Origin: Macrostomum lignano
Lineage: Eukaryota
DNA length: 64,000 nt
Reading direction: 5' to 3'
Assembly (NCBI GenBank): GCA_002269645.1
Contig: NIVC01000782.1
Span: 1-64,000, forward strand
Shown: positions 11,800 to 45,625 of the stretch, piece by piece
How positions within the stretch are numbered: position 1 is the stretch's first letter
Layout of the letters: every line of letters starts with the position of its first letter
Translations under genes and position numbers: made by a program
Notes under the pieces: generated by a model
What the model was told of the DNA's origin: nothing
The model's database searches: none
The model's input: only the letters and a program-made list of their open reading frames with translations

Positions 11800-11906
11800 T
11801 TCATCCACACCTACCCAGCCTCACAGCTTCATCAAGACCCACTCAGCCTCACAGCTTCATCCAGACCCACTCAGCCTCACAGCTTCATCCAGAACCACTC
11901 AGCCTC
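11800..11906 (-). repeat. 28-bp stop-codon minisatellite of gene B (~4 units including the coding unit)
   Basis: Reverse complement of GAGGCTGAGTGGGTCTGGATGAAGCTGT repeated. Confidence 0.9.
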
Positions 11907-12637
11907 GCTGGCCACCTCGGCGGGCACACCGACGAATCTCAGCAGGCGGCACATGCGGCTCGAAGTCTCAAAGGCGCAGCCCTGACAGTCCAGGCTGGTT
12001 TGGCAGTTGATGGCGCACTCGGTAGGGCTTCTGGCAGCAGCACTGCGGTGAGTTGTTGAATTCGGAAAGCTTGAGATGCTGGGAATCGCTGCGACCTGCA
12101 GCTGCGTCATGGTGTCCTTGACTGTTAGTGGGTAATCGTAGAGGAATAAATATTCATTTCAATAACTTTGAGTCACAAATTAGCCTTTAAATGATAGGAC
12201 ATCAAGACTTCGGTTTACATACCGTGAGAGTAGAATATTTCATAGACAGAGTTTTTGCCCATTCCTCCGCACTTCTGAGAAGAGTTTCCTGTGCAAGACG
12301 TTGAGCAATCGCTCTCCGCCGCTCTACCAAGTCTGCCGTAGGCGGAGCCGCAGCAGCAGTAGTTGCTCCGCTGGGCACCGAAGAATTGAAATCGACCGAT
12401 GGCGCAGATTTGAGCGCACATTTCTAGCGTCATCTCTGCGTTAACTACGAAGGCCAAGTTCAGGACATCGATTTTGTAAGTTCCAAAGCTGGCGATACCT
12501 TGCAGTTCGCTCATGTCTCGGTTGCTGTTATCTCCGTCCGCATAGCAACCAAGGTAGCGAACTCCCAGCAGTTGGGGCGTCAGCATCGCCGAAACGCAGC
12601 CGGTAAAAGCAGTCAAAATCAGCACTGTTGGCGACAT
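11877..12637 (-). CDS. WSC-PAN secreted protein, paralog B (219 aa)
   Basis: Exon1 12637-12223 (signal peptide + WSC: RYLGCYADG...MTLEMCAQIC...YCCCG...CSTSCTGN...CGG...NSVY), GTATGT donor, CAG acceptor, phase 1. Exon2 12121-11877 (245 nt; ECAINCQTSLDCQGCAFETSSRMCRLL...EAEWFWMKL*). Confidence 0.9.
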
Positions 12638-13186
12638 GGTCTAAGCGTACAGAAATAAGATGGTACAACGCCTCCTTTTCAGAGCTTCCTAACGAAAACT
12701 CCCTCAGGACGCAGTGTATTAAATATTTCCACAGACTCAAGTGCTGCCCCATCAACCATCAGGCTTTTGAGTTTGTTGACAATATTTCAACCGTTTTTCT
12801 GCTTTCTAATCACACCATTGTCCGTCAAATAGCTCATACTGAAGATTCTGCGTGAGTATGCAGAACAACTTCAGGGTTCTCAAGGATCTCTTTCTCAATG
12901 GCGATCCGTTTGACTGACGAGTTCAATGACTGAGAATTAGTGGTAAGTGACGCACCACTCGGTTATCCTCGATACGGTTGTGTTTTGCTACAATAAACAT
13001 ACAACTTACTGGCTGTAGTGGCGTATCGACACAGGTGCGAGGAGCCCATGAAAAAATGTTTGCTCCTCCAAAAACTAACTTAATGAAAGAGGTAACCAGT
13101 AGCTCGATAAATGACAGGAGCTCAGTTTTCCTCCTCTTTTGAGATCTGGCATCCAATGGCCTGAAAGACAGGGTGAAACAAGAGAC

Positions 13187-13273
13187 AAGAGACAGCGGCG
13201 CCCCACCAAGAGACAGCGGCGCCCCACCAAGAGACAGCGGCGCCCCACCAAGAGACAGCGGCGCCCCACCAAG
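13187..13273. repeat. 21-bp tandem repeat x4 (CAAGAGACAGCGGCGCCCCAC)
   Basis: Direct. Confidence 0.9.
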
Positions 13274-14607
13274 CGACAACTTGCTCAGGTAGTCGCTCAA
13301 GAAACTGTATACTAAGCCATCTACCGTACTGATCCTGGGCATCACCTTTGACCAGCAGGTCCTGGGCGTCACTTTCAACCTGGAGATATTTACTACCTTG
13401 AAAACCATACTTTGATTCTACTTAAACTACTATGAACCGGCAAGACCAGCTGAAAGTCCTGCAGAGATCTCAGAATCTCACATTTCTCCCGGAAGGGCAT
13501 GTACGAGCCTATTTAGGTGTTGTGAATTCATTATCAATCAGCTGATGCTTGTGATGAGGCTAAACATTTCGGACCGAATTTCTAAGAATCTACCAAATGA
13601 ACTGCTTCTAACAGATCGAAACCGTTTTTTGTGAGGCTGACTCAGTGAGTGTCAGAAAACTCAAGTGAAAACGTCGTTTTTACTAAAATTACTAATAGAA
13701 GGTTATTGCATTGGAAATTATTTATATCATTGTACTCGTGCACAATTCTGAACCAACTTGTTATACACTGCAATGCTATTAATACATTATAGGATAAAAC
13801 CGGCATGACTATACATGAATCTGTAACTTTTGCACAAAGGAAAGTTGATGAGAGACAGGGAAGTTACAGTTAATGTAGATGAAAAAACGTGCAAAAAAGT
13901 ATACGATCGTGGCGTCACAGCGCAGACTCCGAGCTCCCTGCGGCGCAGGTTTGGCCAATTTTTTTGCGCTCACCTGTCTTATCCAAATCATTAACTGTAT
14001 CTCGAGGTTTTTCCTGGCTTGCCGTTCCATTCGCAGCAACTCCTCCGCTCCATCAGCAACACTGATTGACCCCACCATTGACAAATATTTGTCACTTTTA
14101 TACTTTGTTTGTTTGTTTGTTTGGGTTCGTCTAAAAGGTTACTGCAGTTATCGAGACAGGCATGGTAGTAGGTACGAGCGTCAAAGTCAGAAAATGTTTG
14201 TTTTAAAATAGTTCTGGTAAACAGTGCTATCAATTAAATCCATCAATCGTTCACAAACTTTATAAGCACACAGTTACTTCACTTAATGGGAGGCTGTCAA
14301 TCCTGGGCTAAACTCTGAGCTATTATTCTGCTATGAGTAAAAAATCTAAATGCTTTACGAGGTAGCTGCCGGCCGTGCCTGCCGATGGAGGGTTGTGGGA
14401 GTTGGCAGGCTCCCAGGTGGCAATGCTAGCACTCTTGCCATTGTTCGCCATTGCTTAAAAAATCACATTAAGACGTAAAACTGAAGCTATCAGCTCTATA
14501 CATATGAAGTTATCTCTGCCGAAGCCTATGTTTTGTCAGCTAGCTTTGAAACCAAGCTATGCCTCAATACACAGAGAAATGTTTTGTACAACCCGCTACA
14601 ATTAGTC

Positions 14608-15010
14608 ACCGGGAATTAAGCATTGGAGAACAATTAACCACCGGGAATTAAGCATTGGAGAACAATTCATCACTGGGAATTAAGCATTGGAGAACAATTA
14701 ATCACTGGGAATTAAGCATTGGAGAAAAATAAATCACTGGGAATTAAGCATTTGAGAACAATTAACCACCGGGAATTAAGCATTGGAGAACAATTCATCA
14801 CTGGGAATTAAGCATTGGAGAACAATTAATCACTGGGAATTAAGCATTGGAGAAAAATAAATCACTGGGAATTAAGCATTGGAGAACAATTAATCACTGG
14901 GAATTAAGCATTGGAGAAAAATAAATCACTGGGAATTAAGCATTGGAGAACAATTAATCACCGGGAATTAAGCATTGGAGAAAAATAAATCACTGGGAGT
15001 TAAACATTGG
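14608..15010. repeat. 32-33-bp minisatellite x~12 (CACTGGGAATTAAGCATTGGAGAACAATTAAT)
   Basis: Direct. Confidence 0.95.
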
Positions 15011-15119
15011 ATTTACATTTATTATTAGTGAACCGAATTCCGTGCAATCTTCAGACATTGACAACCAGGTAGCACCCCTCCGAGCTGGCAGCAGACAAAC
15101 CACCTAACACCCCAACCTG

Positions 15120-15133
15120 CACACACACACACA

Positions 15134-15170: not shown

Positions 15171-15175
<5 letters not shown>

Positions 15176-16238: not shown

Positions 16239-17355
16239 ATGACTTACCGGAGAAGATGCACTTTTGAAGTCGTGCTTTCTGTCTGCTTGACAGCTGCAAT
16301 GGCTGCGGAAGTCGTCAGTTCGGGTGTGCAGTTCTCCGCTGCCAGGACGAGCAGTGCTGTCGCTCCGTCGGAGCTTCTGGTGCAGCCCGAAGACAGCGAA
16401 ATCGGCTGCGGCATTGTGTGCAGCCGCAGGTCCGACTGTTTCGGCTTCTACTGGCTGCTCGGCGCGTGCCGGCTGTTCGACTTGAAGGCGTTTTTCAATG
16501 CCAGCGCCTGGGTCAGCATCGGCACGTGTGACGTCTTCGTGCGAGGTGAGTCACCTGATCGCAGTTGCATATTGCGCATCCGCAGTGGCGTTTGCAGAAG
16601 GGAGGCCGTGACCTGAAAAAATCGCGCTCTCCAGAAACTTATTAAAAAAGGACAACAAGCTATACGAATGACATGCATAAGAGCGCAACTTTTGTCCCAT
16701 CTTTGACATGCCTGACACCTGCCGTGGAGATAAGACCCGTCAAGAGACAGCTGGAAGCTCACCAAGAAACAGGGGTGCCCACTAAGAGACAGTGTCCAAC
16801 AGAACACCAAATGCTGGCGCCCCTTGGGGTTGCGCCCCTCCAATTAAAATTCCTGGTTTCGTCAGTGCGCATCTTCGTTGCGTCTGATTAAATGTATTAT
16901 CGCGTGAGCGCAACGACAACAAATAACTGCTTGCATGTACCTAAATTACAGATTTTACACCTAAGAAACTGCCGATTGCCAGCTGCAGCGAAAGCTCATC
17001 GATGGTGTCGTGCAGCCGCGCCATCGACGGCAACACGAATCGATTTTATGATCAAAACTCCTGCACTCACACTCACAACGGCCTCAGTGAGTGGTGGGAA
17101 GGCAGTCTCACGGCTCCATCTCTCGTGTCATTCGTCACCATCTACAACAGGCAGGACTGCTGCGCTAACGCACTAAACAAGTTCGACATTCTTGTGGACG
17201 GGTCTGTGTGCAACCAGGTGAGGCGCAGCACTCCGTTCTCTGTTTCCGACTTTATCTGCAACGCCCACGGCTCGAAAATCCGCATCTTGAGTCGCAGCGA
17301 TCCGGCAGAGCCCGTAACCATCTGCGAGTTCATGGCCTATGGCATCCAAGGTTAG
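16239..17355 (+). CDS. Secreted PAN/Apple + F-type lectin (fucolectin/FTP domain) protein (236 aa)
   Basis: Exon1 16239-16545 (hydrophobic leader VVLSVCLTAAMAA; PAN GCGIVCSRRSDCFGFYWLLGACRLF), GTGAGT donor, TTACAG acceptor, phase 1. Exon2 16952-17355 with RAIDGN...SCTHT...WW...VTIYNRQDCC...TICEFMAYG, typical of the FTP fold. Confidence 0.9.
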
Positions 17356-19949: not shown

Positions 19950-20308
19950 CCTCTCCTCTCTTCTCTCCTCTCTCCTCTCTCCTCTCTCCTCTCTCCTCTC
20001 TCCTCTCTCCTCTCTCCTCTCTCCTCTCTCCTCTCTCCTCTCTCCTCTCTCCTCTCTCCTCTCTCCTCTCTCCTCTCTCCTCTCTCTTCTCTCCTCTCTC
20101 CTCTCTCTCCTCTCCTCTCTCTTCTCTCCTCTCTCCTCTCTCCTCTCTCCTCTCTCTTCTCTCCTCTCTCTTCTCTCCTCTCTCCTCTCTCTCCTCTCCT
20201 CTCTCCCTTCTCCTCTCTCCCCTCACCTCTTTCTTCTCTCCTCTCTCCGCATTCCTCTCTCTCCTCTCCTGTCTCTCTTCTCCTCTCTCCCCTCTCCTCT
20301 CTTCCCTA
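19950..20308. repeat. Polypyrimidine repeat (CTCTCCT)n
   Basis: Direct; explains the spurious SPLSSLL / ERGERRE ORFs. Confidence 0.95.
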
Positions 20309-24098: not shown

Positions 24099-24284
24099 AT
24101 CCTTACCGCTCACTTTTATTGTGGCCGCTGCTTTGCAACTTTGATGCAGACTTCGCGTTGATATCATTGATATTGTCATCATTATATCTATACCTGCTGC
24201 TGCTCTGTCATTGGATACAGCTCCTATGCACACTGGATGCTTGTCATTGGATAGCAAATGCATTTGCAACGCAATTCCCAGCTT

Positions 24285-24573
24285 TCTAAGAATACCTGTT
24301 CACGATTCTAAGAATAACTGTTTACGCTTCTAAGAATAACTGTTCACGATTCTAAGAATACCTGTTCACGATTCTAGGAATACCTGTTCACGATTCTAAG
24401 AATACCCGTTCACGATTCTAAGAATACCTGTTCACGATTCTAGGAATACCTGTTCACGATTCTAAGAATACCCGTTCACGATTCTAAGAATACCTGTTCA
24501 CGATTCTAGGAATACCTGTTCACGATTCTAAGAATACCTGTTCACGATTCTAAGAATACCCGTTCACGATTCT
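24285..24573. repeat. 22-bp minisatellite x~13 (TCTAAGAATACCTGTTCACGAT)
   Basis: Direct. Confidence 0.95.
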
Positions 24574-24683: not shown

Positions 24684-24984
24684 CGCGACCTACCGGCCAA
24701 TGCCCGCCCGTCCACTCCGAGGGGTTGCCGGCCAGGGCACCGCTGTCCAGCGCCGGTCTCCGACTCTACCTGGCTCACGAGGGCGTTGATAAAGCGGCGC
24801 AGCTGGGGCAAAATCTCGTACGAAAAGTAGTCCATGGGTCACAGGCGGATGACCGGGGCTACCTGAGCTCGGAGGGTTCTGGTTAAGAAAGACTAGTTGT
24901 GAAATGTACAGTGATTAAGGGCCCGTGCACACCTTTAAACACCCCAAGCCACCACGAAAATGATGAGGTCAGTCCTCCCTAAAG

Positions 24985-25440
24985 TCACCTTGAAAATAAG
25001 GGGTCAGTCCCCCAAAGCTACCTGGATAATGAGGGGGTCAGTCCACCTAAGCTACCTGGAGAATGAGGGGTCAGTCGCGGCATAAGCTAGCTGGATAATG
25101 AGGGGGTCAGTCCCGGCCTAAGCTACCTGGATAATGAGGAGTCAGTCCCGGCCTAAGCTACCTGGGTAATGAGGAGTCAGTCCTGGCCTAAGCTGCCTGG
25201 GTAATGAGGGGGTCAGTTCCCCTAAGCTACCTGGATAATGAGGAGACAGTCCCCCTAAGCTACCTGGATAATGAGTGGATCAGTCCCCCTAAGCTACCTG
25301 GATAATGAAGAGATCAGTCCCCCTAAGCTACCTGGGTGATGAGGGGGTCAGTCCCCCTAAGCTACCTGGATAATGAGGGGTCAGTCCCCCTAAGCTACCT
25401 GGATAATGAGGGGTCAGTCCCCCTCAGCTACCTAGCTCGT
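24985..25440. repeat. 33-34-bp minisatellite x~13 (GTCAGTCCCCCTAAGCTACCTGGATAATGAGGG)
   Basis: Direct. Confidence 0.9.
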
Positions 25441-29269: not shown

Positions 29270-31250
29270 CACGGTTGCCAAGAGTGCACCTGGTTTGTTC
29301 ACAACACTGCGCTTTCTGCTCCGATGCCTTCCTTGTCGCCATCTGTAGTTCTGTGCACTTGACTGACCTGTGTTGCAGGCAGGGTTGCTCGAATCTCTGA
29401 GCAACTGGTGTCTTGTGTCTGGTGTCTGGAGAAACAGCCGTGACCTGAGATGGTCATGGTGGCAGCCCGGATGTCTCTTCGCGAGAGGCGCAAGAGGAGC
29501 TTCCGGAGCTGGTGAGAGGGCTGAGGAACGGCGCCTCTGGATTGCCTGCAGGTAGTGCAGCTCGCCCAAGTCGAGCGGTGCTGGGTCCTGATCCACGTTT
29601 TGATGCGCGAGTCGATGACACAGCCGGGAATCGGGACAAGGGATTCGGGCCCGAGAGAGGAGCCGGAGGCACCAACTTTTGCAAGGGCGTCAGCCAGCTT
29701 ATTCCCTAGGATGCCCAACTGCCCCGGAACCCACTTAAGGGTGATTTTGTTGGTGGAGCCCAACATGTTTAGAAGTTTGATACAGTCGAGGACTGTAGCA
29801 GAATTGGTACTACAGCCACTGATGGCATGCAAGGCAGCTTGGCTGTCCGAATGGAAAACGATGCTCTTACCCGTTACGCCAGTGGCGGGAAGCTCTGCAG
29901 TGCAAGAGCTGATGGCGAGAACTTCACTTTGGAAAACACTGGAGTTGACCCCAGTGAACTGAACGTGGGTCACGATGACACCCCGTTCAGGCAGATTTAA
30001 ACACCAAAACCGGTGTTGACTGACTGCTTAGAACCGTCGGTGTAGCACTGGAGCTCACAAGGGTTCCAGTGGTACTTGGTGGTATCGTGCGGGTCGATAG
30101 CTCCGGAGTAGAGTTGTCTCAGGTTGAGCGTTAAGGGTCATGCCTTCGGTGAAGACGCGATAGGACTGGTACTCATTGAGAATATTGAGGCATAGGCCGC
30201 TATGCGAGGCGAGGTTCCGCTTAGCAGGTGCTCTCATGTAAAGAAATTTGACTCCGGCATCTAGTCGACGCCGCGTCGTTCAAGCCGCCTTACCCCTGAC
30301 GAAGAGGTCGAGAGGCGGTAGATCGAGGAAGGCCCCCATGCCGGCAAAGGGCGTGGACCTAGTGGCGTTGCAGATAAGCCTACACGCTCTGCCCTGTATC
30401 GTTTTGAGCAAATCTGCATGGCTTTTGACCTGGGTGGCGCTGACCCAGCCAACAGAAGCGTACGTAATGGCAGGTCTAACTACTGAAGTGTAGATCCACC
30501 AAATGCGCTTTGGGGATAGACCCCAGGAAGTTCCAAGTGCTCGTCGGAGCTGGGCCAGGATGGCTGAGGTCCGCTTGGCTTTTGATTTCACGTGGAAGGA
30601 CCAGTTGAGCCGGTAGTCTAGTATGACCCCGAAACATCTGGTCTGTTTCTCGAAAGCTACCGTAAAGCTGCAGAGGCCTCACTGTATGTTCCAGCGTATT
30701 CTACTGGTGAACATAATGGCAACAGTTTTGGGCTCAGAGAGTTCTAAACCATTGTCATTGGTCCAGGATTCTGCTTTGCGGATAAAGCTCTGCATCAGAT
30801 CCCTCAGCGTGCTGGGGGATGGCCATACCACAATGGCCGTGACGTCGTCAGTTTACCCGACTTTGAAGACGGGGTCAGGTCGGGAGTCGCCCAGAAGAGC
30901 GTCAATGACCAAGTTCCAGAGCGTCGGGGTAAGGACTTCGCCTTGGGATCCTCCCTCCCGCCTTGGGATCTGGCGGAGGTAGTTTGCTCTAGGATTTGGG
31001 CAATGACTGTACAGTTGAAGATCATGTACATGATCCATCGTATGAGGGTAACATGAGATTTGAAACTTTGAAGGGTCCTCAAAAAACGCTTAAAAATGAC
31101 GTACCAACAATGTCAAGAAAAAGAGCCAGGGCGTAACCGTCACCCAGTACCGAACGCTCAATTTTCTCGACTATCGCATGCAGGGCGCTGTCAGTCGACC
31201 TCACGGTAAGAAAAGCATGCTGATTACAGAATAATGCTAAGGATTTCATG
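29270..31250 (-). mobile_element. Degenerate non-LTR retrotransposon (LOA/R1-like, RT + RNase H)
   Basis: QHAFLTVRSTDSAL...LFLDI, SQGEVLTPTLWNLVID, FGVILDYRLNW, WGLSPKRIWWIYTSVVRP (RT); SVFQSEVLAI...FHSDSQAAL...WVPGQLGILGNKLADALAK (RNase H). In-frame stops and frameshifts. Confidence 0.9.
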
Positions 31251-31570: not shown

Positions 31571-31878
31571 TAAGAAGAGGATGGACGAAAAATTGTCCGG
31601 CAAAACTTTATAGTTCTACAAAAATTACTAACAAAAGATTATTTCATTCAAAATGACTTTTACTAGCTCAATTTTACCTTTGAGTTTTTTCTCGTATAAT
31701 AATTGTCAAACATTCTGAACCTGACATGTTACACACTGCTAAATTCAGTTTTTTAACACTAAATTCCAGCATCTCACTTTCTGAACTGCCGAATACAACG
31801 TGAAACAAGCTATTCCGAGAAATAGTGCAAAAATGCATTATTAGAGAGCAACAGCGCACAAAATACAGTTGTGTACTC

Positions 31879-31990
31879 AAGCAATGCAGAGTTAAGTATC
31901 TTGCTCAAGGGCACAAATTGTTCCGAGTGGGTCGAGAATCGAACCCTCGACTTCAAGTCATGAGTTCGTCACTCTAAGCACTAGGCTACA
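31879..31990 (-). mobile_element. tRNA-derived SINE (5' part)
   Basis: Minus strand TAGCCTAGTGCTTAG (A box) and GGTTCGATTC (B box), then the core GTGCCCTTGAGCAAGATACTTAAC, resembling V-/Meta-SINE central domains. Confidence 0.75.
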
Positions 31991-32249
31991 GCCCGTGATT
32001 GGCGAGTCCTTAACTTTATTTTAGTGGTCCATGAGCGCAGCATGGGCTTACGAAATGCAGCTGATTTCTCACTGGCTCAGGCCCCTAGAAACCAGACAGC
32101 CATTCTCGAGTCCAGAAAACTCCAGAGCCCAATGGCACTCAAAACATAAGCCGGTAGCCAGAGATCGGTTCATAGCACAGAGCTGGCATATTCTGAAACG
32201 CCAATACTCCAAGCACTAACTGATAAGACCACCATAGGTATCAAATCAA

Positions 32250-33219
32250 ATGTTTTGGAAAGGCTTTTCTGTCGGCTACTTGCTGATGTGGGTGGCGTTC
32301 GGAAGCTGCTTGACTTCGGTGCCGCCTCATCCGACGGCATTCCGCTACATCGGCTGCTTCGTGGACAAAAAGGACCCCGACATGACAGGCCTTGTTGGAG
32401 TCGCTACAGTCGGTCCGTATTGGACACATTCCGGATGGCCATCAATTGCGCGTGGTGCTTCAATGACACTGCAGCTGTGCAGCCAGATCTGCGCTTATGG
32501 GAGATTTCGATACTTCGGTGCGAGGTACGGTGGAAACTGCTGCTGTGGCAACAGCTACGGCTCGTTCGGTCCAGCCCCGGAGAGTGACTGCTCGTATAAA
32601 TGCAAGGGAAACTCATCTCAAATCTGCGGTGGAGACATGAGGAACTCCGTCTACGAAAATATTTATAATCACGGTGAGAGGGACTTTTTCCGAAGCGAAT
32701 GTTGTTTTGTTTGTCATTGAGAGCACTGGACGTCAAAATATTGTTATAACGTTAAAAACGGTCGCACGAATCAGAATAGCACTGATTAGTTTGTGCTGAA
32801 AATATTCTTTTTGAAACTCTATTGAGAATGCAAAGATTTTGAAAAAGTCATGTATAGCAATTCGCATTGAATAAATCATATAGAGATGTCTATAAAAACA
32901 CACTATCGAATGGGTCTGACCTTCCTGTTTTAGTTGTGTTTTTAATTTAATTCTGTTTTAATTGAACTTTGTAGCTGGCCTAACAGTGGCCAGGCTCCCA
33001 ACTTCTGCCATGCCGAGCATCACAGCTTCACTGAGCTCCATCACCCACAGCAGCGTCTCTGCCGACAGCGCCATTGAGTGCGCTGCCGCCTGCCAGCGAA
33101 GCCCGGACTGTCAGGGCTGCGCCTTCGTGCCTTCGAACCGCATGTGCCGCCTGCTGAGATTCACCGCTGTGCCCGCTGAGGTGTCCAGCGAGGCTGAGTG
33201 GGTCTGGATGAAGCTGTGA
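32250..33219 (+). CDS. WSC-PAN secreted protein, paralog E (222 aa)
   Basis: Exon1 32250-32673 (424 nt), GTGAG donor; exon2 32975-33219 (245 nt), phase 1; followed by only ~1 extra degenerate 28-bp unit. Confidence 0.92.
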
Positions 33220-34239
33220 GGCTGCGAGGGTCTGAAGAACTGTCACTGTCCTACAACTATTCAGTCAAACGGAAGCCCTTTTAGACTTCAATATATTTTT
33301 ATCAGTACTTTTTCTGCTACTGCAAGACTCTTGTAGGTGCATTATGTAGTTTAATATGGTTTTAAGCAATTAAGGGCTTTTTAATTTAGGATAAAAAGTT
33401 AAACGTTGTTGTCGTTGGGTTAATAAGTTGTTAGGTTAGGAACAGAACCAAAATAATACACAAAATAAAAAACTTTCGAAGTGAAACCTAAGTCGAGCGC
33501 ACGGCTTTATAAAAGGATTTCAACCTAAAAAACCGTGAAGTATCACGATTTTAATGTTGCTTCTTTTGCATTTCGATTATTCGTGAGAAACTCCATGGAA
33601 AATGCCAGCAGTGTAACCAAAGTTGCAGAGGCTGGTTCTGCGATAACAACCATACGGTCGGCTTTTTTCATCAAGGAAGCTGGAAGCGTTTCCCTGCGTT
33701 CAGCCGTTAGAAACGGATCCCATAGGCTTCTGCACTGATGCCTGTGAATCAGCCAAGGCAGAGCTGGCTGGTTCCTCAGCATCCGCGCCGGCATTCGATT
33801 CGATGAAGAATTAAAGAGTGCGATTCCGCAAGTCGGGAGAAATCGAATGGATCTTCTTACGTATGCATTCATTCTATTGTTCTCACAAATCGATTCCTGT
33901 CCACCAGAGCGGCAGAAAGGGAGGGGGGTTCAGTAAACATCGACAGGACTTGTGAATACGCATGTATCCGTTGCATTAATTAGCAAGAAATTCAAATGTC
34001 TGAGTAAATAGATGAAGGTGAGAAAGCAAACTCGTGGACAGATTTACCATCCACTGCAAAGAAGCAGAAGTTGCCGCTCTCTGTCGGAAAGCAGACAGCT
34101 GCTCAGACGTGTGTGCTACTCGTAGAATGAAACATTTGCTCGCGTTCGATTTCCATGGTGACAGCTTTGCTTGTCTCAGCGGGAGGAAATTCCAGATAAA
34201 ATCATCGTTTTCAGTTGCCACCTGTAAACCTCTGAGGCA

Positions 34240-35737
34240 ATGCTGATATTAAAAATACTAGCAATTGATCTCCTGCTGTTCTGGGCAGCCCTTGCTAGGC
34301 TGTGCACCGCTTCCGTACCACCCAACCGCAGGGCATTCGCTACGTGGGTTGCTTTAGGAGGACGTTAGAGGCTCGTATCATTGGAACACTTGCTGCTATC
34401 GGTAGTTTTGTTGAAAGCAATTCGCTCACTGTAAAATTTTGTGCAGTCACATCTGCACCTACGGGCGGTTCCGAAACTTTGGACTTCTATTCGGTTCGTT
34501 ATGCTTGTAGAGAACTGTTAGTTATATCGTAATCAACTACTTAAAGTAATATTCTAAGAAAATCCTATTAAACTTGCAATCTATTTTTAGAATGAGTCAT
34601 GTTCAAACAGAAGTGACTCAGTGCCCTACGTAGGACCAACGTTTTTTTGATCCAAGGACCGGATTTTAGCAGCTGTGTTTGCTCAACTCAATATGTGGTA
34701 ATGCTCAGACATTCATGACTGCTTATTCAAACATGAATGACCTAAGTAAATATCTGATCTCAAACCGGTTTTTCCCGAAAATTATGCTATAAATATAAGT
34801 GAAAATCCGAGTAAAAAATCAGACTCGGAGCGGTCTCAAAGAAGACTTTGAAGACAAAGAAAAGAAGACCAATCTCTGAGGGACGATACTTGTCCAATTG
34901 GTAAGCGCTTACCAAATTTAGTTCTTTGTTGCTAGCGTTAATAAGTTTATTAATTGCTTACGAGAGCCTTTTTGCCGGCCCATTTGAGAAAGACCTCCTT
35001 GTTTCTTAGGATATATATTCCCAGAGGATGTATTTTATTAATTTGAGTTATCCGTCACGTTTCGGACGTAACGGAGAAGACGCCCTTCATGAGGACCTAC
35101 TACAGAAACTCAGAGAATTCAATTTTTAATTTCGAGCTCGAGGACCGTCAGGACTTCTGATTCGCTCTTGTTTTTGCCCGATCAACAGATAAAGTGAAGG
35201 ACTCCAGGAGACAACAGTTCACAGAAGCCAATTATCACTACTACAGTTCAGCAAGTGTCCCCCAGTGTCTATAGAAGTGGGAGTTTTCGAGTGACTGATC
35301 GCCACTCTTGAAACTCTTCATGCTCCTGCGGCCGGACTAGCGGATCCAACTGGAAGGAATTGGAGAGCAACTGTCAATCCGAATGCAGCGGCAATGTGTC
35401 TCAGATGTGCGGCCTTGAACTGGGCGACTCTGTTTATGAAGTAATTTACCCTGTGGGTAAGTAGGGGGGGGGGGCGTCTATTTGACTGCTCAGTAAGAAA
35501 AGCATATCTTTGACAATAATTGGTCTTAAAAATTGATCGAATGTCCTATCCTAACGCGTGTATCACACTCAGATCGCTCTCTGCTGACATGGCTTCAAAG
35601 GGGCAAAAAATGCCGAGCATTTCAAGCTTTATGAAACTGAGATCCGTAACTGACCTTAGCGCAGAAGTCAGCGAAGTCATCGAGTGAGCTGCCACCTGCC
35701 AGAGAAGCCCGGACTGTCTGGGCTGCACCTTGAGTCT
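34240..35737 (+). pseudogene. WSC-PAN paralog F (pseudogene)
   Basis: MLILKILAIDLLLFWAALARLC...RYVGCF; frameshift near 34440; 815-bp insertion inside the WSC exon; exon resumes CSCGRTSG...CQSECSGNVSQMCG...SVYEVIYPV|GTAAGT. In the PAN exon the first Cys codon is TGA (~35685) and the 3' end is deleted into the repeat array. Confidence 0.88.
34506..35320. mobile_element. Probable solo LTR (815 bp) inserted in the WSC exon of F
   Basis: Begins TGTAGAG and ends CTCTTCA (TG...CA, imperfect inverted ends), flanked by TGCT on both sides (34502-34505, 35321-35324). Removing it restores F-G-S-L-C-S-C-G. Confidence 0.8.
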
Positions 35738-36272
35738 GTGAGGTTCAGTGGGTCTGGATGAAGCTGTGAGGCTGAGTGGATCTGGATGAAGCTGTGAGGC
35801 TGAGCGGATCTGGATGAAGCTGTGAGGCTGAATGGGTCTGGATGAAGCTGTGAGGCTGAGCGGATTTGGATGAAGCTGTGAGGCCGAATGGGTCTGGATG
35901 AAGCTGTGAGACTGAGCGGATCTGGATGAAGCTGTGAGGCTGAATGGGTCTGGATGAAGCTGTGAGACTGAGCGGATCTGGATGAAACTGTGAAGCTGAG
36001 TTGGTCTGAATGAAGCTGTGAAGCTGAGTGTGTCTGGATGTAGCTGTGAGGCTGAGTGGGTCTGGATGCAGCTGTGAGGCTGAGCGGATCTGGATGAAAC
36101 TGTGAAGCTGAGTGGGTCTGAATGAAGCTGTGAAGCTGAGTGTGTCTGGATGCAGCTGTGAGGCTGAGTGGGTCTGGATGAAGCTGTGGAGGCTGAGTGG
36201 GTCTGGATGAAGCTGTGAGGCTGAGTGGGTCCGGATGAAGCTGTGAAGCAGAGTCGGTCTGGATGAAACTGC
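35738..36272 (+). repeat. 28-bp minisatellite after F (~19 units)
   Basis: Direct. Confidence 0.95.
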
Positions 36273-36734
36273 CAGGCTGATTCATCTCTAATGAAAAACT
36301 GTTAGAAGGATTCTGAGCAAGAATTATAGCGGAATTATTAAAAATAGACGTGACTCAGGCTTTGACTATTATTTATGCCTTATTGTTTTTAACGCTATCA
36401 AGAATAACTACTGAAAATGCAATGTCCAGGGAAAACGTTGTGGTTCTACTAAAAATACTAATAAAGGATTGTTACATTCAAAATTAAATTTACTAGCTCA
36501 ATTTAAACTTTTGGATTTAATCTAGTTGTTAAAACATTCTGAACCTGACATGATATACGCAACTAAGTTCAGTTTTTAACACTAAACTCGCGCATCTCAA
36601 ATTCTGGACTGCCGAATACAATATGAAACGAAACTATTCAAGTGAATAGATTGAAAAATGTATTATTACAGAGCGACAGCGCTCAGAACACAGTTGTATT
36701 TCCGAAACAGATCGAAATGAAACGCAAAGCTTAA

Positions 36735-36986
36735 TGGGACGACAGCTCAGCCGCAGCAATTGCGCGGCGCATCTGAAGGCTGCGTACGGCTGTTCAGTCC
36801 AAGGACTGGGGGTTCGCCACAGCCTCAATTACCCCAGCTAATGCTGGAATCCATTTTACAGCTGGGTGAACTGAAGCAATGCAGAGTTAAGTGTCTTGCT
36901 CAAGGACACAAATTTTTCTGAGTGGATAGGGAATCGAACCCCCGACCTTCAAGTCGTGAGTCCGACGATCTAACCACTAGACTACA
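36735..36986 (-). mobile_element. tRNA-derived SINE, near full length
   Basis: A box, B box (GGTTCGATTCC), core GTGTCCTTGAGCAAGACACTTAAC; homologous to 44675-44938 and 53215-53397. Confidence 0.8.
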
Positions 36987-37237
36987 ACCCACGATTGGCG
37001 AGTGCAGCGTCCTTAACATTATTTTAGCGGCCCATGAGCGCGCACGAGCTTGAAAATGCAGCTGCTTTCTCACTGGCTCAGGCCCCTAGCAACCAGACAG
37101 CCATTCCCGAGTCGGGAAAACATCAGAAGCGGTTGCGATCAAAACATAAGCGTAGGAACCGGTTCACAGCACAGAGCAGGCACATTCGGAAACCCCAAAA
37201 CTCCAAACACTGACCATAAAGACCGGCAGAGGATCAA

Positions 37238-38184
37238 ATGTTTTCAAAAAGCTTTTCTGTAGGCTACTTGCTGATGTGGGCAGCGTTCGGAAGCTGCTTG
37301 ACTTCCGTGCCGCCTCATCCGACGGCATTCCGCTACATCGGTTGCCACGTGGATAAAAGGGACCCCGACATGACCGGTCTCGTTGGAGTCGCTACATTCG
37401 GTCCGTATTCGACATATCCCGGATGGCCATCTCTTTTGCGAAACGCTTCAATGACGCTGCAGCTGTGCAGCCAGATCTGCGCTTATGGGAGATTTCGATA
37501 CTTCGGTGCGAGGCTCAGTGAATACTGCTGCTGTGGCAACAGCTACGGCTCGTTCGGTCCAGCCCCGGCTAGTGACTGCTCGTATAAATGCAAGGGAAAC
37601 TCGTCTCAAATCTGCGGTGGAAACATGAGGAACTCCGTCTACGAAAATATTTATAATCACGGTGAGAGGGACTTTTTCTCATGCAAATTTTGTTTTGCCT
37701 GTCAGGACGGCAACGTCGTTAAAACATCAAAAACCGTAACACAAAGCAGGATTTTTTATGATTTCATACTGAAAATATTCTTTTTAAAACCAAACTGCAA
37801 ATTCCAACTGGAAAAGTCAGGGCAATCAGTGTTCGTTGAATAAATCCCAGATATTTCCATACATTCGTAAACAGATTTATTATTTCTATAAGTTTTTGAG
37901 TAAAAATTTCTAAATTCTGTTTTAATACAACATTTGTAGCTGGCCAAGCAGTGACCAAGCTGCCAGCTTCTGCCATGCCGAGCATCTCAGCTTCACTGAG
38001 CTCCATCACCCACAGCAGCGTCTCTGCCAAGAGCGGCATCCAGTGCGCTGCCGCCTGCCAGCGAAGCCCGGACTGTCAGGCCTGCGCCTTCGTGCCTTCG
38101 AGCCGCATGTGCCGCCTGCTGAGATTCACCGCTGTGCCCGCTGAGGTGGCCAGCGAGGCTGAGTGGGTCTGGATGAAGCTGTGA
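37238..38184 (+). CDS. WSC-PAN secreted protein, paralog G (222 aa)
   Basis: Exon1 37238-37661 (424 nt); exon2 37940-38184 (245 nt); phase-1 GT-AG intron. Confidence 0.92.
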
Positions 38185-38628
38185 GGCTGAGTAGGTCTGG
38201 ATGAAGCTGTGAGGCTGAGTAGGTCTGGATGAAGCTGTGAGACTGAGTGGGTCTGGATGAAGCTGTGAGGCTGAATGGGTCTGGATGAAGCTGTGAGGTT
38301 AAGCGGGTCTGGATGAAGCTGTGAGGTTAAGCGGGTCTGGATGAGGCTGTGAGAATGAGAGGGTCTGGATGAAGCTGTGAGGCTGAGTGGGTCTGGATGA
38401 GGCTGTGAGAATGAGAGGGTCTGGATGAAGCTGTGAGGCTGAGTGGGTCTGGATGAGGCTTTGATAATGAGAGGGTCTGGATGAAACTGTGAGACTGAGT
38501 GGGTATGAATGGGGCTGTGAGACTGAGCGGGTCTGGATGAGGCTGTGAGAATGAGAGGGTCTGGATGAAACTGTGAGACTGAGTGGGTATGGATGGAGCT
38601 GTGAGGCTGAGCGGGTCTGGGTAAACTA
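38155..38628 (+). repeat. 28-bp stop-codon minisatellite of gene G (~17 units)
   Basis: Direct; first unit is coding. Confidence 0.95.
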
Positions 38629-39635
38629 TCACTGTTTCTACAATAAAAAAACTCAAACAGTAGTCCTTCTAGGCCTCAAAAGTATTTTATGTTCTATCAG
38701 TACATATCTTGCTGCCATTGTAACAAGCTTGTACGTGCATAATGTTCTGTAATATGGTTTTAAGAGATTCTTTATTTTCCATTTAAGATAAAATGTTGAA
38801 AGTTTATCTCGTTGGGTTGATACGCTTCATCAACGATACCGAATTATAACTAGGAAACTAATAAACTACCTTTAAGTCACACTTAGTGACGGAATTGCCG
38901 AACGCATGGCAGTATAAATGAATTTCAACCTAAAGAACCGTGAACTAACACGATCTTAATGTTGCTTCTTTTGCATCATGATTTTTCGTGAGAAAATAAA
39001 GATAGAAAGGAGTTCCGCTTTGACGGCACAAATCTATGCATTCTTTACAGGAGCTCAACTTTACTGCAAAACGGTAGGACAAACTACGAAATAAAAAATA
39101 AAATATTCAATGGAAACTGAAAGCAGAGCATCCAAAGTAGCAGAGGTGCCTCTGTGACAGCAACCGTTGGACTGCTTTTGCTGTCCTGAACAAAAGCGTC
39201 ACTTTAGTTACAATCTTTATCAGCTCGCTTGGTCCACTTCCTTTATCCAGGAAGCTGGAAAAGTTTCCCTGCATCCAACCGTGAGAAAACAAATCCCAAG
39301 ACTTCCTTACTGATGCCTGCGAATCAACCAAAGGAGATCTGTCACTCCTCACCCGCGTCGGAAGTGAAGAATGCGACTCTGCAAGTCAGGAGAAATCGAA
39401 TGGATCTTTTTCCATCAGCATTCATTCTCTTTTTTTTCTCCCAAATCGATCCCTGGCCACCGAAGCGGGAGTAAGGAAAGGGGGTTGGGTAAACTTTGAC
39501 AGGACCTGTGAATATACGCATAACTCAAGAAAGCAAGAAATTCACATATCTGAGTAAATCGATGAATGCGAGAAATCGAACTCATGGACTGCCGACACAG
39601 ATTTATTATCCTCATATTTATTATCTGAATTAGCT

Positions 39636-40842
39636 ATGCAAAGATAAAAATACTACCAATTAATCTCCTGCTGTTCTGTGCAGCTCTTGGTAGGCTGTGC
39701 ACCACTTCCGTACCACCGCAATCGCAACGCATTCGCTACGTCGGTTGCTATGCGGAAAGTTACAAAGATCTGAGAGGAATTTTGGGCTCTGGTCTCTTGC
39801 TGCGGTGTCGCGCAGGGAGCTCCAGTGGTGCCGGTGTCCGCAGCGCAGCCCCCCTCCGGAGAGTCCAGGAGGTGGTTTGTCGTCCACCCGGTAGCCCTTG
39901 GGTAGCGGACGAGCTGGCAGAGATTCTCGAGCCAGAAAACATCGGAGAGATCCGGGTTTGGGCCGAGGTAGGCGAGCCTAGTAAAGGCGGGGCATTCACA
40001 GATAAAGTGCTCCGCATTCTCGACACCGGAGAGGCAGAAGGGGCATTCCTCACTGCGGATTTTTCCATGGAGGTGACGATGCCTGGCAAAACAGCCATGA
40101 CCCAAAATGGCCATGTTCACCGCCCTGATGTCCCTGCAGTAGAGTCCAAGCAGGGCCCAGCGCAAGGCGGGGGAAGGACAGGGGACAACCGCACGGGATT
40201 GCCGGTAGTCGGGGGCGTTAGCCCAGGGCTTTGGTCTCGCTGGGCCATTTAAATGCTGTCGGCGGTTTTTTGAAAGTAATTCGCTCACTGTGGAGCTGTG
40301 CCGCCCGAGCTGCTCATATGGGCGGTTCCGCTACTTTGGTTGTCAATTCGATTCGTTTTGCTACTGCGGCAGGATGTACGGATCAAATGGAAAGGATTTT
40401 GAGAGCAACTGCCAATCCAAATGCAGCGGCAATGTATCTCAGATATGCGGTGGGGAAGTGAGCAACTCTATTTATGCATGAAGTAACTTATCATGTGGGT
40501 AAGTCCGAGTTTGAATGCTGGGTAAAAACGTAAATTTGACAGTAATTAATCTTAGCAATTGACAATATTCCTATCCTAACACATGTACCACCACACTCAG
40601 ATCGCTCTCTGCTGACAAGACTGCAAGTTGTAAAAATGCCAACCGTTTCAAGCTACAAGAAGCTGAAATCCGTCACCGCCCTTAGCACAGAAGTCAGCAG
40701 TGTCTTCCAGTGCGCCTCCTTCTGCCAGCGAAGCCCGGACTGTCAAGGCTGCGCCTTTGTGCCTTCGAGCCGCATGTGCCGCCTGCTGAGATTCACCGCT
40801 GAGGTGGCTAGCGAGACTGAGCGGGTCTGGATGATGTTGTGA
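39636..40842 (+). pseudogene. WSC-PAN paralog H (pseudogene, sister of F)
   Basis: Damaged start (ATG CAA AGA TAA), leader [12 protein letters not shown]...RYVGCYAE, ~450-bp LINE insertion, WSC resumes ([10 protein letters not shown]...CYCG...CSGNVSQICGG), 4-nt insertion before the GTAAGT donor. PAN exon 40601-40842 is open. Confidence 0.88.
39805..40250 (-). mobile_element. 5'-truncated LINE 3' end (same family as 29270-31250) inserted in H
   Basis: RQSRAVVP...[19 protein letters not shown] aligns with RQSRGAVP...RDIRAATMTISGHGCFSRH; C-terminal CPFC-x8-H-x4-C knuckle. Boundaries approximate. Confidence 0.85.
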
Positions 40843-41036
40843 GGCTGAGTGGGTCTGGATGAAGCTGTGAGGCTGAGTGGGTCTGGATGAAGCTGTGAGG
40901 CTGAGTGGGTCTGGATGAAGCTGTGAGGCTGAGTGGGTCTGGATGAAGCTGTGAGGCTGAGTGGGTCTGGATGAAGCTGTGAGGCTGAGTGGGTCTGGAT
41001 GAAGCTGTGAGGCTGAGTGGGTCTGGATAAAACTAT
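40813..41036 (+). repeat. 28-bp stop-codon minisatellite of H (8 units, six perfect)
   Basis: Direct. Confidence 0.95.
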
Positions 41037-41825: not shown

Positions 41826-43542
41826 ATGCAAGCGCCTATAATTTTAGTTGCCTTCCTGTCTGCATGGGTGCCGTTGCTGGCTTCTGAGCCGCCCCAGTTT
41901 CGAGAAGTTCGCTACATCGGATGCTTCGCTGACAGCAGAAGTAACAGCGATCGAGACCTGCAAGGACTGGAAGGCGTCATTGCGTTAGACCGGTACACAG
42001 TTGACCGCAAGTACAGCGCCTTCGTCAAGAGCAGGAAAATGACACTGCAGAAGTGCAACCGGATCTGCTCATACGGTCGGTTCCGCTATTTTGGTGTCCA
42101 AGCAGCTTTTTTTTGCTGCTGCGGATCTGCGTACGGGTCGCTTGGCGCGGTCGATGAGAGAAAATGCGCCGCTCCGTGCAGTGGGAACGCGTCGCAGGTG
42201 TGCGGTGCCAGCTGGACCAATTCCATCTTTGAAATCGTCTATAAGCCTAGTAGGTAATCGCTTATTGCATGCATTGCAAGGTGGCTAAACTCACAAAACA
42301 TGTCAGTTTCACTGAAGCTTGAATGTTGAGCTTCCTAATTTTATCTGAAACAAGTATGGGTATGAAACAAGAAATGCTACCGGAGGCCTGAAATAAAGCA
42401 AATTATACTGATACTGCTTTTGTCCGACTAAAAATCTCATAGAATGAAGATATAGATGGGGCCATAGACAGCACTGAGAAGCCTGACTGAGAGACAGGCA
42501 AACCTGGAAGGCCGCTTAAAAAATTGAAGCCTATTCCTAGTTGAATTTCTAGTTTAGCTGTGAATATTCAGGGTTAAACTAAGAATGAGTGAAATTAAAG
42601 ATCGAGCCCTAGTTAAACTGACCGTTTGAATTAAAAGCACTTAAACAAAGCTGTACTTCAATTGTTATTCCTACTACTTCTAGGGCTTTTCATAACTAAA
42701 ATAATTAATCATCTTACTAAATTTTATTAAACTACTAACCGCAGTAGTAAAATTCAGGTATAGGTCCTAAATTTTGGATGTTCGAGTTTGGATGTCCACT
42801 TAAAGGTTTGCCTGCCTCTCAGTCTTGGGCTGTCTATGGCCCAACCTATCTTTATTCTGTGGGGTTCTAACTTTGGATTTGACCCTCTTCCCGTGAAGAA
42901 ACCCTTTTCACGGTGCAAGTTGGTGTTGGTGTTCCTTTTTGTTGATTGTCGATTTTTTGAAAAACAACTTTTTATAAAATGGTTAGGAATTTACACTTCA
43001 CTGTGCCTGGGGGATAGGCCTTCAAGGCCGCTAATTACACGAGCAGAGCCAAGCCGAGATTCCAATTTAGCACCAAATTAATTTGACCGCACTTGGAATC
43101 GAGCCTGGGCCGCTGGCACATCAGAGCGCCGCTAGTAGAGTACTAGTCTAAGGACCCCTGAAATCGACAGGATCTGGGATATCCATTGATTTCTTTATGC
43201 CTTAATGGGAAGTTCATCATTTGAAAACTACAAAACCTACGTTTGGTTGGCTGATTAATTCCTATAATTATGAGTACGTCTTGCAATTCTCCCACAGCTG
43301 AAAAAATCCTGACCAAGCTACCAGTGACCGACATGCCAAGCATCTCAGTCTTGGCGAGCGCTTCTGCCTATCGCAACTCTACGGCGAAGAGCGCCATCCA
43401 ATGCGCCGCCACCTGCCATCGAAGCCCGGACTGTCAGGGCTGCGCCTTCGTGCCTTCGAGCCGCATGTGCCGCCTGCTGAGATTCGCCGCTGTGCCCGCT
43501 GACGTGGCCAGCGAGGCTGAGTGGGTCTGGATGAAGCTGTGA
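41826..43542 (+). CDS. WSC-PAN secreted protein, paralog I (222 aa)
   Basis: Exon1 41826-42249 (424 nt; MQAPIILVAFLSAWVPLLAS + WSC), GTAGGT donor, 1048-nt phase-1 intron, CCCACAG acceptor. Exon2 43298-43542 (245 nt), followed by ~2-3 more 28-bp units. Confidence 0.9.
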
Positions 43543-44674
43543 GGCTGAGTGGGTCTGGATGAAGCTGTGAGGCTTTAGATTGAGTGGTTCTAGATGAGGC
43601 TGTGAGGCTGTGGGTGACTGAGCTAGATACTTAAATGTTATGCACGTGAGCAAACTATGAATAGAACGGGTGTTACTGAAAACGATACATTGAACCTCTT
43701 AAGAACATTGCTGCTAACCCTTAATTCAAGTTTTTTCTCCCCTGTCTTTAATAAGTTTGATGTTAACCCTGATTGTTCTTTGGAGTAGTAAGCAGAAAAT
43801 AAAAATCTTTTTTTTAATTCATTTTGCTGATCGATTATAGTTTTTGTGAATTTGCCCTTAATTTTTCTATTTGACAGCTATACTTTAAACAGCAAATATG
43901 CGTTAAAATATGGATTAGCTAATATTAGCTTGTATCTTTGGATGTAGACGTATCTGGGATGAATAAGCCGTCAATTCCTTTCAGAAAAAGCAGCAGAAAA
44001 GTTGAAGGAATAATTCCATGGCTTATCCAAGTTTGGTTCGGTGATACTAATTCGATCATGAAAAGGCAGACCAAATCCATTGTATCGGAGCTTTTCCGGT
44101 AGGTAGCTGACGCAGCGTCCAACCCCTAAACTTCCCAGTCAAAGACTCGTGCAGAGAAAGTCTGCTGCGGAAATTCTAGAAACAAAGAAGTTAAACTTTC
44201 CGCAGCAGCGAACCGATGTTTGCTTTACAAATCGATAAACGCACCGTCTTCTTCATACAATGCCAAGTCATGGTAAAGGAAAAGTTTGGGAAAATTCTCA
44301 CTTTTTTTCGATTTAGGAATAAACGAAATCTTTGGAGCTGAAGTCCATGAACGCTCATTTTTTAGAAATGAGCTGGAGGCCGATAAAGAAACCACAAAAT
44401 GTTCAATCGTCTCTAACATTTAGCAAAATATCAAATTGAAGATAAGGAAGATTGGACATTAAGCTGAGAACTTATTCTTTACCTTCAATGTAGTCGAACC
44501 CTCGCGCAAAGTGTATAGTGTCCCACAGACCCTGCACCTGAGGCACCCTAGCCTGATGAAGCTAGGGCGACATCAGCTGCTGCCACGTCCGGCGGGCAGA
44601 ATCACCCACGCCTGTCTTCCAGTATCAGGAAATTGATAATAACAATAAATGATTACACCTGCCCCAATTGGACC

Positions 44675-44938
44675 AGATGTGCAACCGACAGCTCAGCAGC
44701 AGCAATCGCAAGGCGCATCTGAAGGCTGCGTTCGACTGTTCAGTCCAAGAACTGGGGGGGGGTCGTCACACACATACCCTCGATTACCCCTAGCTAGCAC
44801 CCGTCTTACAGTTGTGTCAACTGAAGCAATGTCGAGTTAAGTGTCTTGCTCAAAGACAAAAAAAATTCAGTGGGATCCGGGAATCTAACCCGACAACCTT
44901 AAGTCGTGAGTCAGACGCTCTAACCACTACAGGCTACA
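44675..44938 (-). mobile_element. tRNA-derived SINE
   Basis: Colinear with the 36735-36986 copy, including GTTAAGTGTCTTGCTCAA. Confidence 0.78.
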
Positions 44939-45495
44939 ACCCCGCCGGAAAGCAACGGGGAGCAGTGTGGATGTAACATTTGTCAGCATTGAAGCGCTTG
45001 ACACCAATTGCCTCAATGGATGGAATCTGATAACATCGTCCTGAGTCGCATCATGACCACATCCATCCTTTTCTGCATTTAACTCCGTCCAGACTCAGCT
45101 TATTCAGCTGTTGCACTACTAGTGGGAGATCCGCTGCAGAATTCAGCTTCCGTCTACCGCACTAGTAGTCGCACGTCTCCACGCTTATAGGTTTTAGGCG
45201 TTCCGCTAGTTCCATCACAGGCAGTTTGCCTGTTGTAAATGAAAAGAAGCTGTGAAATTAATTTGTTAGATCATTTAACAATCTATAACTCAGCACAAAA
45301 CTGCAACAAAGCAAGCCACCTTACAGAGAGCCAAGTCCAAGAACACCAGACTCGCACTTCTGATCTGCTGGGAACACTACTTTCTGCAGCAATCCTTTTG
45401 TCTCTATCTGCAACTGAAACTACTTACGAACGTCCATTTGCTAGTACGTGCAGATCTTGTCTGGTGTCAGTGCTACTGTGCAGTTCAGACTACTC

Positions 45496-45625
45496 AGGCT
45501 GAGTGGGTCTGGATGAAGCTGTGAGGCTGAGTGGGTCTGGATGAAGCTGTGAGGCTGAGTAGGTCTGGATGAAGCTGTGAGGCTGAGTAGGTCTGGATGA
45601 AGCTTTGAGGCTGAGCTGGGTGAAG
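45496..45625 (+). repeat. Orphan 28-bp array (~4.5 units) with no PAN exon upstream
   Basis: Same unit. The downstream flank 45625-46160 is homologous to the flank of gene I (43600-44130). Confidence 0.9.

Follow-up and report, generated by a model that had tools for sequence, protein, structure and literature searches.

The analysed window, a 64,000-nucleotide stretch of contig NIVC01000782.1 of the flatworm Macrostomum lignano, carries a cluster of genes, lettered A to I by position, in most of which a 28-bp tandem repeat begins inside the coding sequence, at the last nine codons, and runs on past the stop codon. This arrangement raises the question of how such an array came to be shared by a gene family, and whether it bears on the near-identity of the 3' ends of genes that have diverged elsewhere. 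The intact copies consist of two exons separated by a phase-1 intron (Table 1). The part encoded by exon 1 has a hydrophobic N-terminus and contains a WSC domain (in paralog G, Pfam PF01822 with 49.6 bits for a cut-off of 27.8), while exon 2 encodes a PAN/Apple domain (in G, PAN_1, PF00024, with 29.8 bits for a cut-off of 21.4). The encoded proteins are small and probably secreted.

The 28-bp unit and the stop codon

The unit GAGGCTGAGTGGGTCTGGATGAAGCTGT was matched 50 times in the 64-kb window at three mismatches or fewer, for 0.00 matches expected from dinucleotide-preserving shuffles. Eight arrays of period 28, containing from 1 to 19 units, were found, and their internal matches of 86-100% according to Tandem Repeats Finder (TRF) give them the head-to-tail structure of a minisatellite. 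Besides these eight arrays, there are a relic of 1.5 units and, at paralog C, a diverged copy.

In B, D, E, G and I, the intact genes that carry an array, the final nine codons (E-A-E-W-V-W-M-K-L) are those of unit 1. The stop codon TGA, which was read directly from the DNA in these same five genes, is composed of T28 of this unit and of the GA that opens the next one. Since 28 is 9x3+1 and the unit opens with GA, a TGA is rebuilt at every junction. The TGA triplets were located at unit positions 6, 20 and 28, which is one per frame, and the longest open run in the sense strand of an array was 13 codons; a ribosome reading through the first TGA would meet a second one after a single codon. An earlier reading of the window, made from the sequence only, had described both the coding unit with its junctional stop and the stops in the remaining sense frames, and our results agree with it on both counts. 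A unit of length 3n+1 with every frame closed leaves unit 1 as the single translated one, the remainder of the array being non-coding. Among composition-matched shuffles, 2.8% also had a stop at each of the three offsets, and one of the three stops of the unit is that of the gene itself; the closure of all frames is not strong evidence of design.

The number of units ranged from 1 to 19.4 across the window paralogs and was 17.8 at another M. lignano locus, L001 (one assembly). All the copy numbers given by the sequence-only reading were recovered by the TRF counts and by our reading of C and E. Its further claim, that changes of copy number leave the protein unaltered, holds for identical units only, as variant units reach the coding unit or come from it. 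Variant first units were observed in B (EAEWFWMKL), D (...MKP) and H (ETERVWMML). A GAGACT (E-T-E) variant, common within the arrays, is the coding unit of the M. lignano proteins P0003, P0004 and P0005, and TAG codons were found in some internal units. Units 1 and 2 of the D array share the CCG (Leu to Pro) variant and E-T-E is found both inside arrays and as a coding unit, so the coding unit takes part in the dynamics of the array and variants can pass from the array into the C-terminus.

Within the F array, which is the longest, variant units recur at a multi-unit spacing, for example in units 10-11 and 14-15. The divergence of the units from the consensus increased with distance from the coding sequence in the G array (rho 0.72, p 0.002), while no significant gradient was obtained in the F, D, H, B or L001 arrays; the polarity of the arrays is suggestive and is not general.

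The unit contains 13 G and 3 C, a strong strand asymmetry. On the antisense strand, the arrays have no stop in any of the three frames, which is also the case in 50% of composition-matched shuffles, and we therefore rejected the antisense open reading frames (ORFs) that run through the arrays as coding sequences. These spurious ORFs reach 202 amino acids with a period of 28 amino acids, an example being 35677-36285 on the minus strand, and gene finders could miscall them, which calls for caution when such loci are annotated.

Neither AATAAA nor ATTAAA was present within any array, and the first such signal, where one was found, was located 17-372 nucleotides (nt) beyond it. These positions are consistent with arrays that would lie in the 3' untranslated region (3'UTR), without being proof of it. 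The RNA fold predicted for four units was a weak one with many G-U pairs, its z of -2.8 being what a repeat would be expected to give, and it was not counted as structure, while a search of the entire window against Rfam at gathering thresholds gave 0 matches.

Concerted evolution of the 3' end of the genes

Synonymous and nonsynonymous divergence (dS and dN) was estimated by the Nei-Gojobori method on codon alignments of the six intact genes of the window and of the M. lignano copy at L001; B, C, I and the D/E/G group were taken as the old lineages. In exon 1, synonymous sites were saturated between the old lineages (dS from 1.3 to infinity) and dN was 0.41-0.51. The dS between old paralogs was 0.8-3.4 in the 5' half of exon 2 for all pairs but one. 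In the last 42 codons, the dS between the array-bearing copies was 0.00-0.22: it was 0.00 for the pairs I-G and I-E, and 0.12-0.22 when B was compared with the others. Paralog I clustered with D, E and G in this constant segment (dS 0.00-0.04), yet was saturated in exon 1. Synonymous sites of the segment can nevertheless change, as the L001 copy differed from the window copies by a dS of 0.25-0.31 and paralog C, the least homogenised copy, differed from the others by 0.34-0.40.

The transition between the two regimes was sharp. Around nucleotide 560-570 of the alignment, nucleotide identity jumped from about 55% to 93-100%, and the maximum chi-square test on third codon positions located breakpoints between aligned codons 179 and 201 of the 230, or 29-51 codons ahead of the stop, with a position that varied from pair to pair (permutation p<=0.0005 for most old pairs). 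A second mosaic gene besides I was found outside the window: the N-terminal part of the M. lignano protein P0004 was 85% identical to P0001 and 52% identical to G, whereas its last 58 residues were 95% identical to G and 69% identical to P0001. Two of the features by which gene conversion is recognised were thus found, namely a collapse of dS limited to one segment with a significant breakpoint, and mosaic genes (I and P0004). The GC content at third codon positions was 0.81-0.90 in the constant segment vs 0.60-0.70 in exon 1, which fits GC-biased conversion and is no proof of it.

Comparisons on the 3' side of the segment showed where the homogenised block ends. The identity between D and G was 86% over the 5' flank, exon 1 and the intron, 94% over exon 2 and the start of the array, and 75% after the array, while the post-array identity between D and E was 67% and the post-array sequences of I and G could not be aligned. 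In E and I, the homogenised tract stopped within the first one or two units, just ahead of old degenerate units. The block ended in the array, and never extended into the post-array flank, in all the paralog comparisons made. Two rearrangement breakpoints are also located in or at arrays. One belongs to pseudogene F, in which a Cys codon is changed from TGC to TGA and the PAN exon has lost its 3' part, with an alignment gap of 56 nt reaching into the tail of a unit; the earlier statement that the PAN exon of F is deleted directly into the array is thereby borne out for this 3' part. The other is that of an orphan array, described below.

The sequence that evolves in concert comprises the final ~126-150 nt of the coding region and the 5'-most array units, and the array marks the 3' edge of the homogenised block. 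The mechanism is likely to be ectopic gene conversion, as judged from the alignments, and it would include the inverted copy B and probably dispersed copies. The sequence-only reading had proposed that exchange among the paralogs, seeded by the array, explains a constant exon. The limitation of the dS collapse to the last 42 codons supports exchange as the cause of the constant 3' end, and the 3' end of the block and two breakpoints coincide with arrays as that reading would require, but what is constant is only the last 40-50 codons, the 5' half of exon 2 being as diverged as exon 1.

The two pseudogenes help to separate mechanical homogenisation from selection on the gene product. The constant segment of H differed from that of G by a handful of sites and a gap of 9 nt, and its array contains six perfect units (2-7) despite its own diverged coding unit ETERVWMML. 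Since the arrays of F and H are homogeneous or expanded in the absence of a working gene, a mechanical process (conversion or unequal exchange) is favoured over selection on the protein or the mRNA, and the long or pristine arrays of these dead genes argue against a tuned 3'UTR function.

One observation concerns the 5' halves of exon 2 in D, E and G (28220-28338, 32975-33093 and 37940-38058). The dN (0.13-0.14) was higher than the dS (0.07) for the pairs D-E and E-G, which may hint at diversifying selection, the counts being small.

The array as an inherited trait of one subfamily

The terminal units of the D and H arrays share the variant ...ATAAAACTAT, to which the terminal unit of G is related, and homology can be recognised between the flanks that follow the arrays of B, D, E and G. 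The array must therefore have counted two or more units before these duplications took place. The same array was found outside the window, at L001 (contig NIVC01000038.1), where the P0005 gene, located beside a P450 gene, ends in ...ETEWVWMKL and is followed by 17.8 copies of the exact window consensus unit starting at the same codon. A divergent subfamily represented by P0012 (locus L002) ends in ...GKFATRV and has no array. As paralog A also lacks one, the array is a derived trait of the '...WVWMKL' subfamily. Paralog A was considered as a parallel case and was rejected, because its 25-bp array (8710-9706) begins ~270 nt past the stop and is unrelated to the coding sequence.

The 28-mer could instead have come from a dispersed satellite or transposable element inserted beside these genes, and two orphan arrays without an upstream gene are what such an origin would leave behind. 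However, unit 1 was at the position of the last nine codons in every gene-linked array, the diverged first units of C and H included, and the post-array flanks vary by subfamily. The larger orphan, from its unit 2 through its flank (45523-46287), aligned with the array and 3' flank of paralog I (43513-44239) at about 70% identity, and it is by this homology a gene remnant and not a mobile copy. The smaller one, a degenerate relic at 10869-10912 that was absent from the list of the sequence-only reading, is nearest to the variants of the F array, and neither a PAN exon nor a flank that could be recognised lies close to it. No further copy of the 28-mer was found in the 20-kb loci L001 and L002, and the exact 28-mer gave 0 matches in metagenome contigs, so that copies away from genes and with constant termini of their own were seen neither in the window nor in these sequences. 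A mobile-element motif dispersed away from the genes had been named as the observation that would speak against the earlier reading; what was observed is a fixed unit 1 in the gene-linked copies and an orphan that keeps the flank of I. An origin from a satellite or transposable element is, on this evidence, highly improbable.

Proposed mechanism and alternative explanations

We propose that a 28-bp tandem duplication, covering the last 27 coding bases and the T of TGA, occurred in the ancestor of the '...EAEWVWMKL' subfamily, and that this proto-array was inherited by every gene copy. The arrays then grew and shrank independently, through slippage or unequal sister-chromatid exchange, to give 1 to 19 units, with old degenerate units remaining at their 3' ends. 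Repeated ectopic gene conversion would meanwhile have kept the last ~126-150 nt and the 5' units near-identical, through tracts with variable 5' ends and with a 3' end within the array. We consider this account, in which an ancestral duplication, independent array turnover and ectopic conversion of a 3' block bounded by the array are combined, to be reasonably probable. Their long perfect repeats and G-rich strand asymmetry make the arrays plausible sites of breaks, mispairing or tract termination, and the perfect 28-bp repeats may assist ectopic pairing or initiate conversion.

Several points weigh against this account. The causal role of the array is deduced only from its position, and the lower homogenisation of paralog C is a single case (n=1). 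The array could be a passive passenger or the mere stopping place of conversion tracts, and the low dS could in principle reflect constraint at the RNA level on the last 126 nt. Finally, array copy numbers were obtained from a single assembly per locus, and those of long arrays could be imprecise.

If the array were a neutral passenger, conversion would be driven by the homology of the coding segment alone, or by selection for a uniform C-terminal module, and the array would be an adjoining duplicate prone to slippage. The homogenisation of E and I, which have one or two perfect units and equal the long-array genes in this respect, fits this, as does the richness of the window in minisatellites, with at least ten other arrays in 64 kb. 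It leaves unaccounted for the arrest of the homogenised block within the array in every comparison, the independent breakpoints at arrays in F and in the orphan, and the position of the array-less paralog C as the least homogenised copy, and we think it unlikely. The last ~126 nt and the repeats could also form a functional 3'UTR module, an RNA element with, for example, sites for RNA-binding proteins or small RNAs acting on stability, localisation or translation, whose nucleotides would be kept by selection on the RNA and whose copy number would tune dosage. The identity of the consensus unit between the window and the dispersed locus L001 speaks for such a module, as do the poly(A) signals, which lie beyond the arrays and would place them in the 3'UTR, and the rarity of all-frame stops among shuffles. 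Against it stand the pseudogenes F and H, which hold the longest and the most perfect arrays, the range of copy numbers from 1 to 19, the many unconstrained variants of internal units, the synonymous differences of the segment in paralog C and in the L001 copy, the weakness of the four-unit fold and the absence of an Rfam family match; we regard a module of this kind as improbable.

A last possibility goes further than the mechanism that we propose. The array and the constant segment would together form a built-in recombination cassette, a landing pad of perfect repeats that anchors frequent ectopic exchange, so that the C-terminal module stays uniform while the WSC heads diversify and variant units (ETE..., ...MKP, EAEWF...) are shuttled between the array and the coding unit. 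A loose parallel would be antigen-gene switching, with its conserved 3' homology blocks, here in a flatworm and for secreted proteins that may be those of the seminal fluid. We give this possibility little credence.

Comparison with known systems

Human MS32 (D1S8) and CEB1 are G-rich hypervariable vertebrate minisatellites that are associated with conversion and rearrangement. The arrays of the window resemble them by their head-to-tail units of tens of bases, their excess of G over C, their interspersed variant units with multi-unit recurrence and, in the G array, their end-biased gradient of divergence. They differ from them in that the array starts inside the coding sequence and rebuilds the stop, is family-wide and not confined to a single locus, and is known here from paralogs and not from individuals. 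Slightom, Blechl and Smithies reportedly described, in 1980, a conversion between the fetal globin genes HBG1 and HBG2 bounded by a (TG)n repeat in intron 2, which they are said to have proposed as a site that starts or limits exchange. Both there and in the window, a simple repeat forms the end of a block converted between tandem paralogs, whereas the repeat of the window is a minisatellite of 28 bp derived from coding sequence and located after the stop instead of in an intron, and the block is of ~130-150 nt and concerns six or more paralogs, including an inverted and probably a dispersed copy. The 3'UTR of SLC6A3 (DAT1) contains a variable number of tandem repeats of 40 bp between the stop codon and the poly(A) signal. 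The arrays of the window have a similar predicted placement and a copy number that varies among paralogs, whereas the SLC6A3 repeat does not cover the stop codon, is not derived from coding sequence and belongs to a single gene.

Coding tandem units with turnover and exchange are described in reports on the zinc-finger coding minisatellite of PRDM9 (PMC3890296), on the WD-repeats exchanged among paralogs of the Podospora hnwd genes (PMC2873952), and on the KRTAP1 genes, with their concerted coding regions and diverged flanks (bioRxiv 10.1101/282418). The window family shares with these systems tandem units in a terminal part of the gene, turnover and exchange of units, and homogenised repeats beside diverged flanks; their units are in frame and translated, whereas the unit of the window is of length 3n+1 and only unit 1 is translated.

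What differs here is the geometry, a 3n+1 unit that straddles the stop codon and restores it at its junctions, and the fact that it is shared by a whole gene family. The locus is explicable by established mechanisms and is no new kind of system. It is a compact one, in which the birth of a minisatellite from coding sequence, the turnover of arrays and segment-limited gene conversion can be seen side by side, and in which the 3n+1 unit provides a natural marker and leaves the array free to vary without extension of the protein. If the array starts or guides conversion, the family would be suited to the study of how simple repeats shape concerted evolution; if it does not, the locus would still be a clean, textbook-style example. 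Transgenes can be made in M. lignano.

Relatives of the gene family

A word-indexed protein search returned 17 relatives with 38-65% identity, 16 of which are from M. lignano, while an exhaustive protein search returned thousands of more distant WSC-domain proteins. To judge by the word-indexed matches, the family is lineage-specific. Protein searches made with the exon 2 peptide alone and with the 309-amino-acid ORF at 683-1612 gave no matches. The M. lignano protein P0028 is a fused model of 1115 amino acids that joins a G-like gene to a Cys-rich motif also present in the window at 56346-56837 on the minus strand.

Several prostate or seminal-fluid candidates of M. lignano, e.g. Mlig-pro46, have been reported as WSC-domain proteins; several of the seminal-fluid candidates were described as WSCD2-like, and among the prostate-gland candidates there is a transcript with WSC domains (PMC6953679, PMC4490696). 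The window family may be linked to the seminal fluid, this being only a lead from the literature. In the literature, we found no paper linking Macrostomum to the WSC and PAN family of the window or to the 28-mer.

Organisation of the cluster and other features of the window

The coordinates of the paralogs and of their arrays are given in Table 1. The pairs [E, F] and [G, H] (31594-36280 vs 36423-41036) are two copies of a block of two genes, repeated with a period of about 4.8 kb, so that the cluster grew at least once by the copying of a pair of genes of different subtypes. A lone exon 1 fragment of the D/E/G type was found at 48234-48464 on the minus strand; it covers the first 71 codons with 69% identity to G and has neither exon 2 nor array.

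Table 1. Paralogs, pseudogenes and 28-bp arrays of the window (plus and minus strands; number of units according to TRF where given).
Feature	Position	Strand	Description
Paralog A	7927-8441	+	Distant WSC and PAN-like gene without 28-bp array; internal outgroup; mapped by tblastn
Second orphan relic	10869-10912	+	~1.5 degenerate units
B array	11800-11906	-	TRF 3.8 units; unit 1 coding, final unit degenerate
Paralog B	12637-11877	-	Exon 1 12637-12223 (WSC), intron 12222-12122, exon 2 12121-11877 (PAN/Apple); ends EAEWFWMKL
Paralog C	24098-23204	-	Exon 1 24098-23666, exon 2 23448-23204; tail EFEYVWMKP
C unit	23236-23209	-	Single diverged coding unit and partial second
Paralog D	27574-28464	+	Exon 1 27574-27997, exon 2 28220-28464; ends ...EAEWVWMKP
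D array	28435-28602	+	6 units (TRF 28435-28595, 5.7)
Paralog E	32250-33219	+	Exon 1 32250-32673, exon 2 32975-33219
E array	33190-33245	+	One perfect coding unit (33190-33217) and one degenerate
Pseudogene F	34326-35739	+	Exon 1 fragments 34326-34504 and 35321-35449
F array	35740-36280	+	19 units (TRF 35736-36280, 19.4); longest array
Paralog G	37238-38184	+	Exon 1 37238-37661, intron 37662-37939, exon 2 37940-38184; constant segment 38056-38181
G array	38155-38620	+	TRF 16.6 units
Pseudogene H	39647-40842	+	No in-frame ATG; frameshift near exon 1 end; 9-nt deletion in exon 2
H array	40813-41036	+	8 units (TRF 40813-41028, 7.7); units 2-7 perfect consensus; unit 1 ETERVWMML
Paralog I	41826-43542	+	Exon 1 41826-42249, 1048-nt intron, exon 2 43298-43542
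I array	43513-43625	+	2 perfect units, then ~2 old degenerate (TRF 43513-43574, 2.2)
Orphan	45495-46287	+	4.5 units at 45495-45621 (TRF 45496-45621) and downstream flank; no PAN exon upstream

An insertion of ~490 bp (about 39790-40280) divides the first exon of pseudogene H. This insertion resembles part of a non-LTR (long terminal repeat) retrotransposon, without a Pfam match, and has a short peptide resemblance to a fragment of the same type at 29299-29973 on the minus strand, which gave a weak RNase H match just under the Pfam cut-off.

Other tandem arrays of the window are located at 8710-9706, 10042-10633, 14598-15011, 19951-20302, 24284-24573, 24959-25433, 50046-50258, 51136-51415 and 56614-57288. 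They include a 25-bp unit in ~39 copies, (GTA)197, and units of 32, 7, 22, 34, 12, 28 and 30 bp, and the formation of minisatellites seems to be generally active in this genome.

Two ORFs of transposase type were also observed. An apparently intact ORF of the mariner/Tc1 type, encoding 345 amino acids (Transposase_1, HTH_48), is located at 51630-52667 on the plus strand, and an ORF of 647 amino acids with THAP, TNP-like RNase H and P-element transposase domains is located at 59428-61371 on the minus strand. Finally, an ORF at 16239-17355 on the plus strand contains an F5/8 type C (NedA-like galactose-binding) domain at 17002-17355, and the ORF upstream of it begins in the manner of a signal peptide and has a Cys pattern that recalls PAN domains; this region may be another secreted gene of the lectin type.

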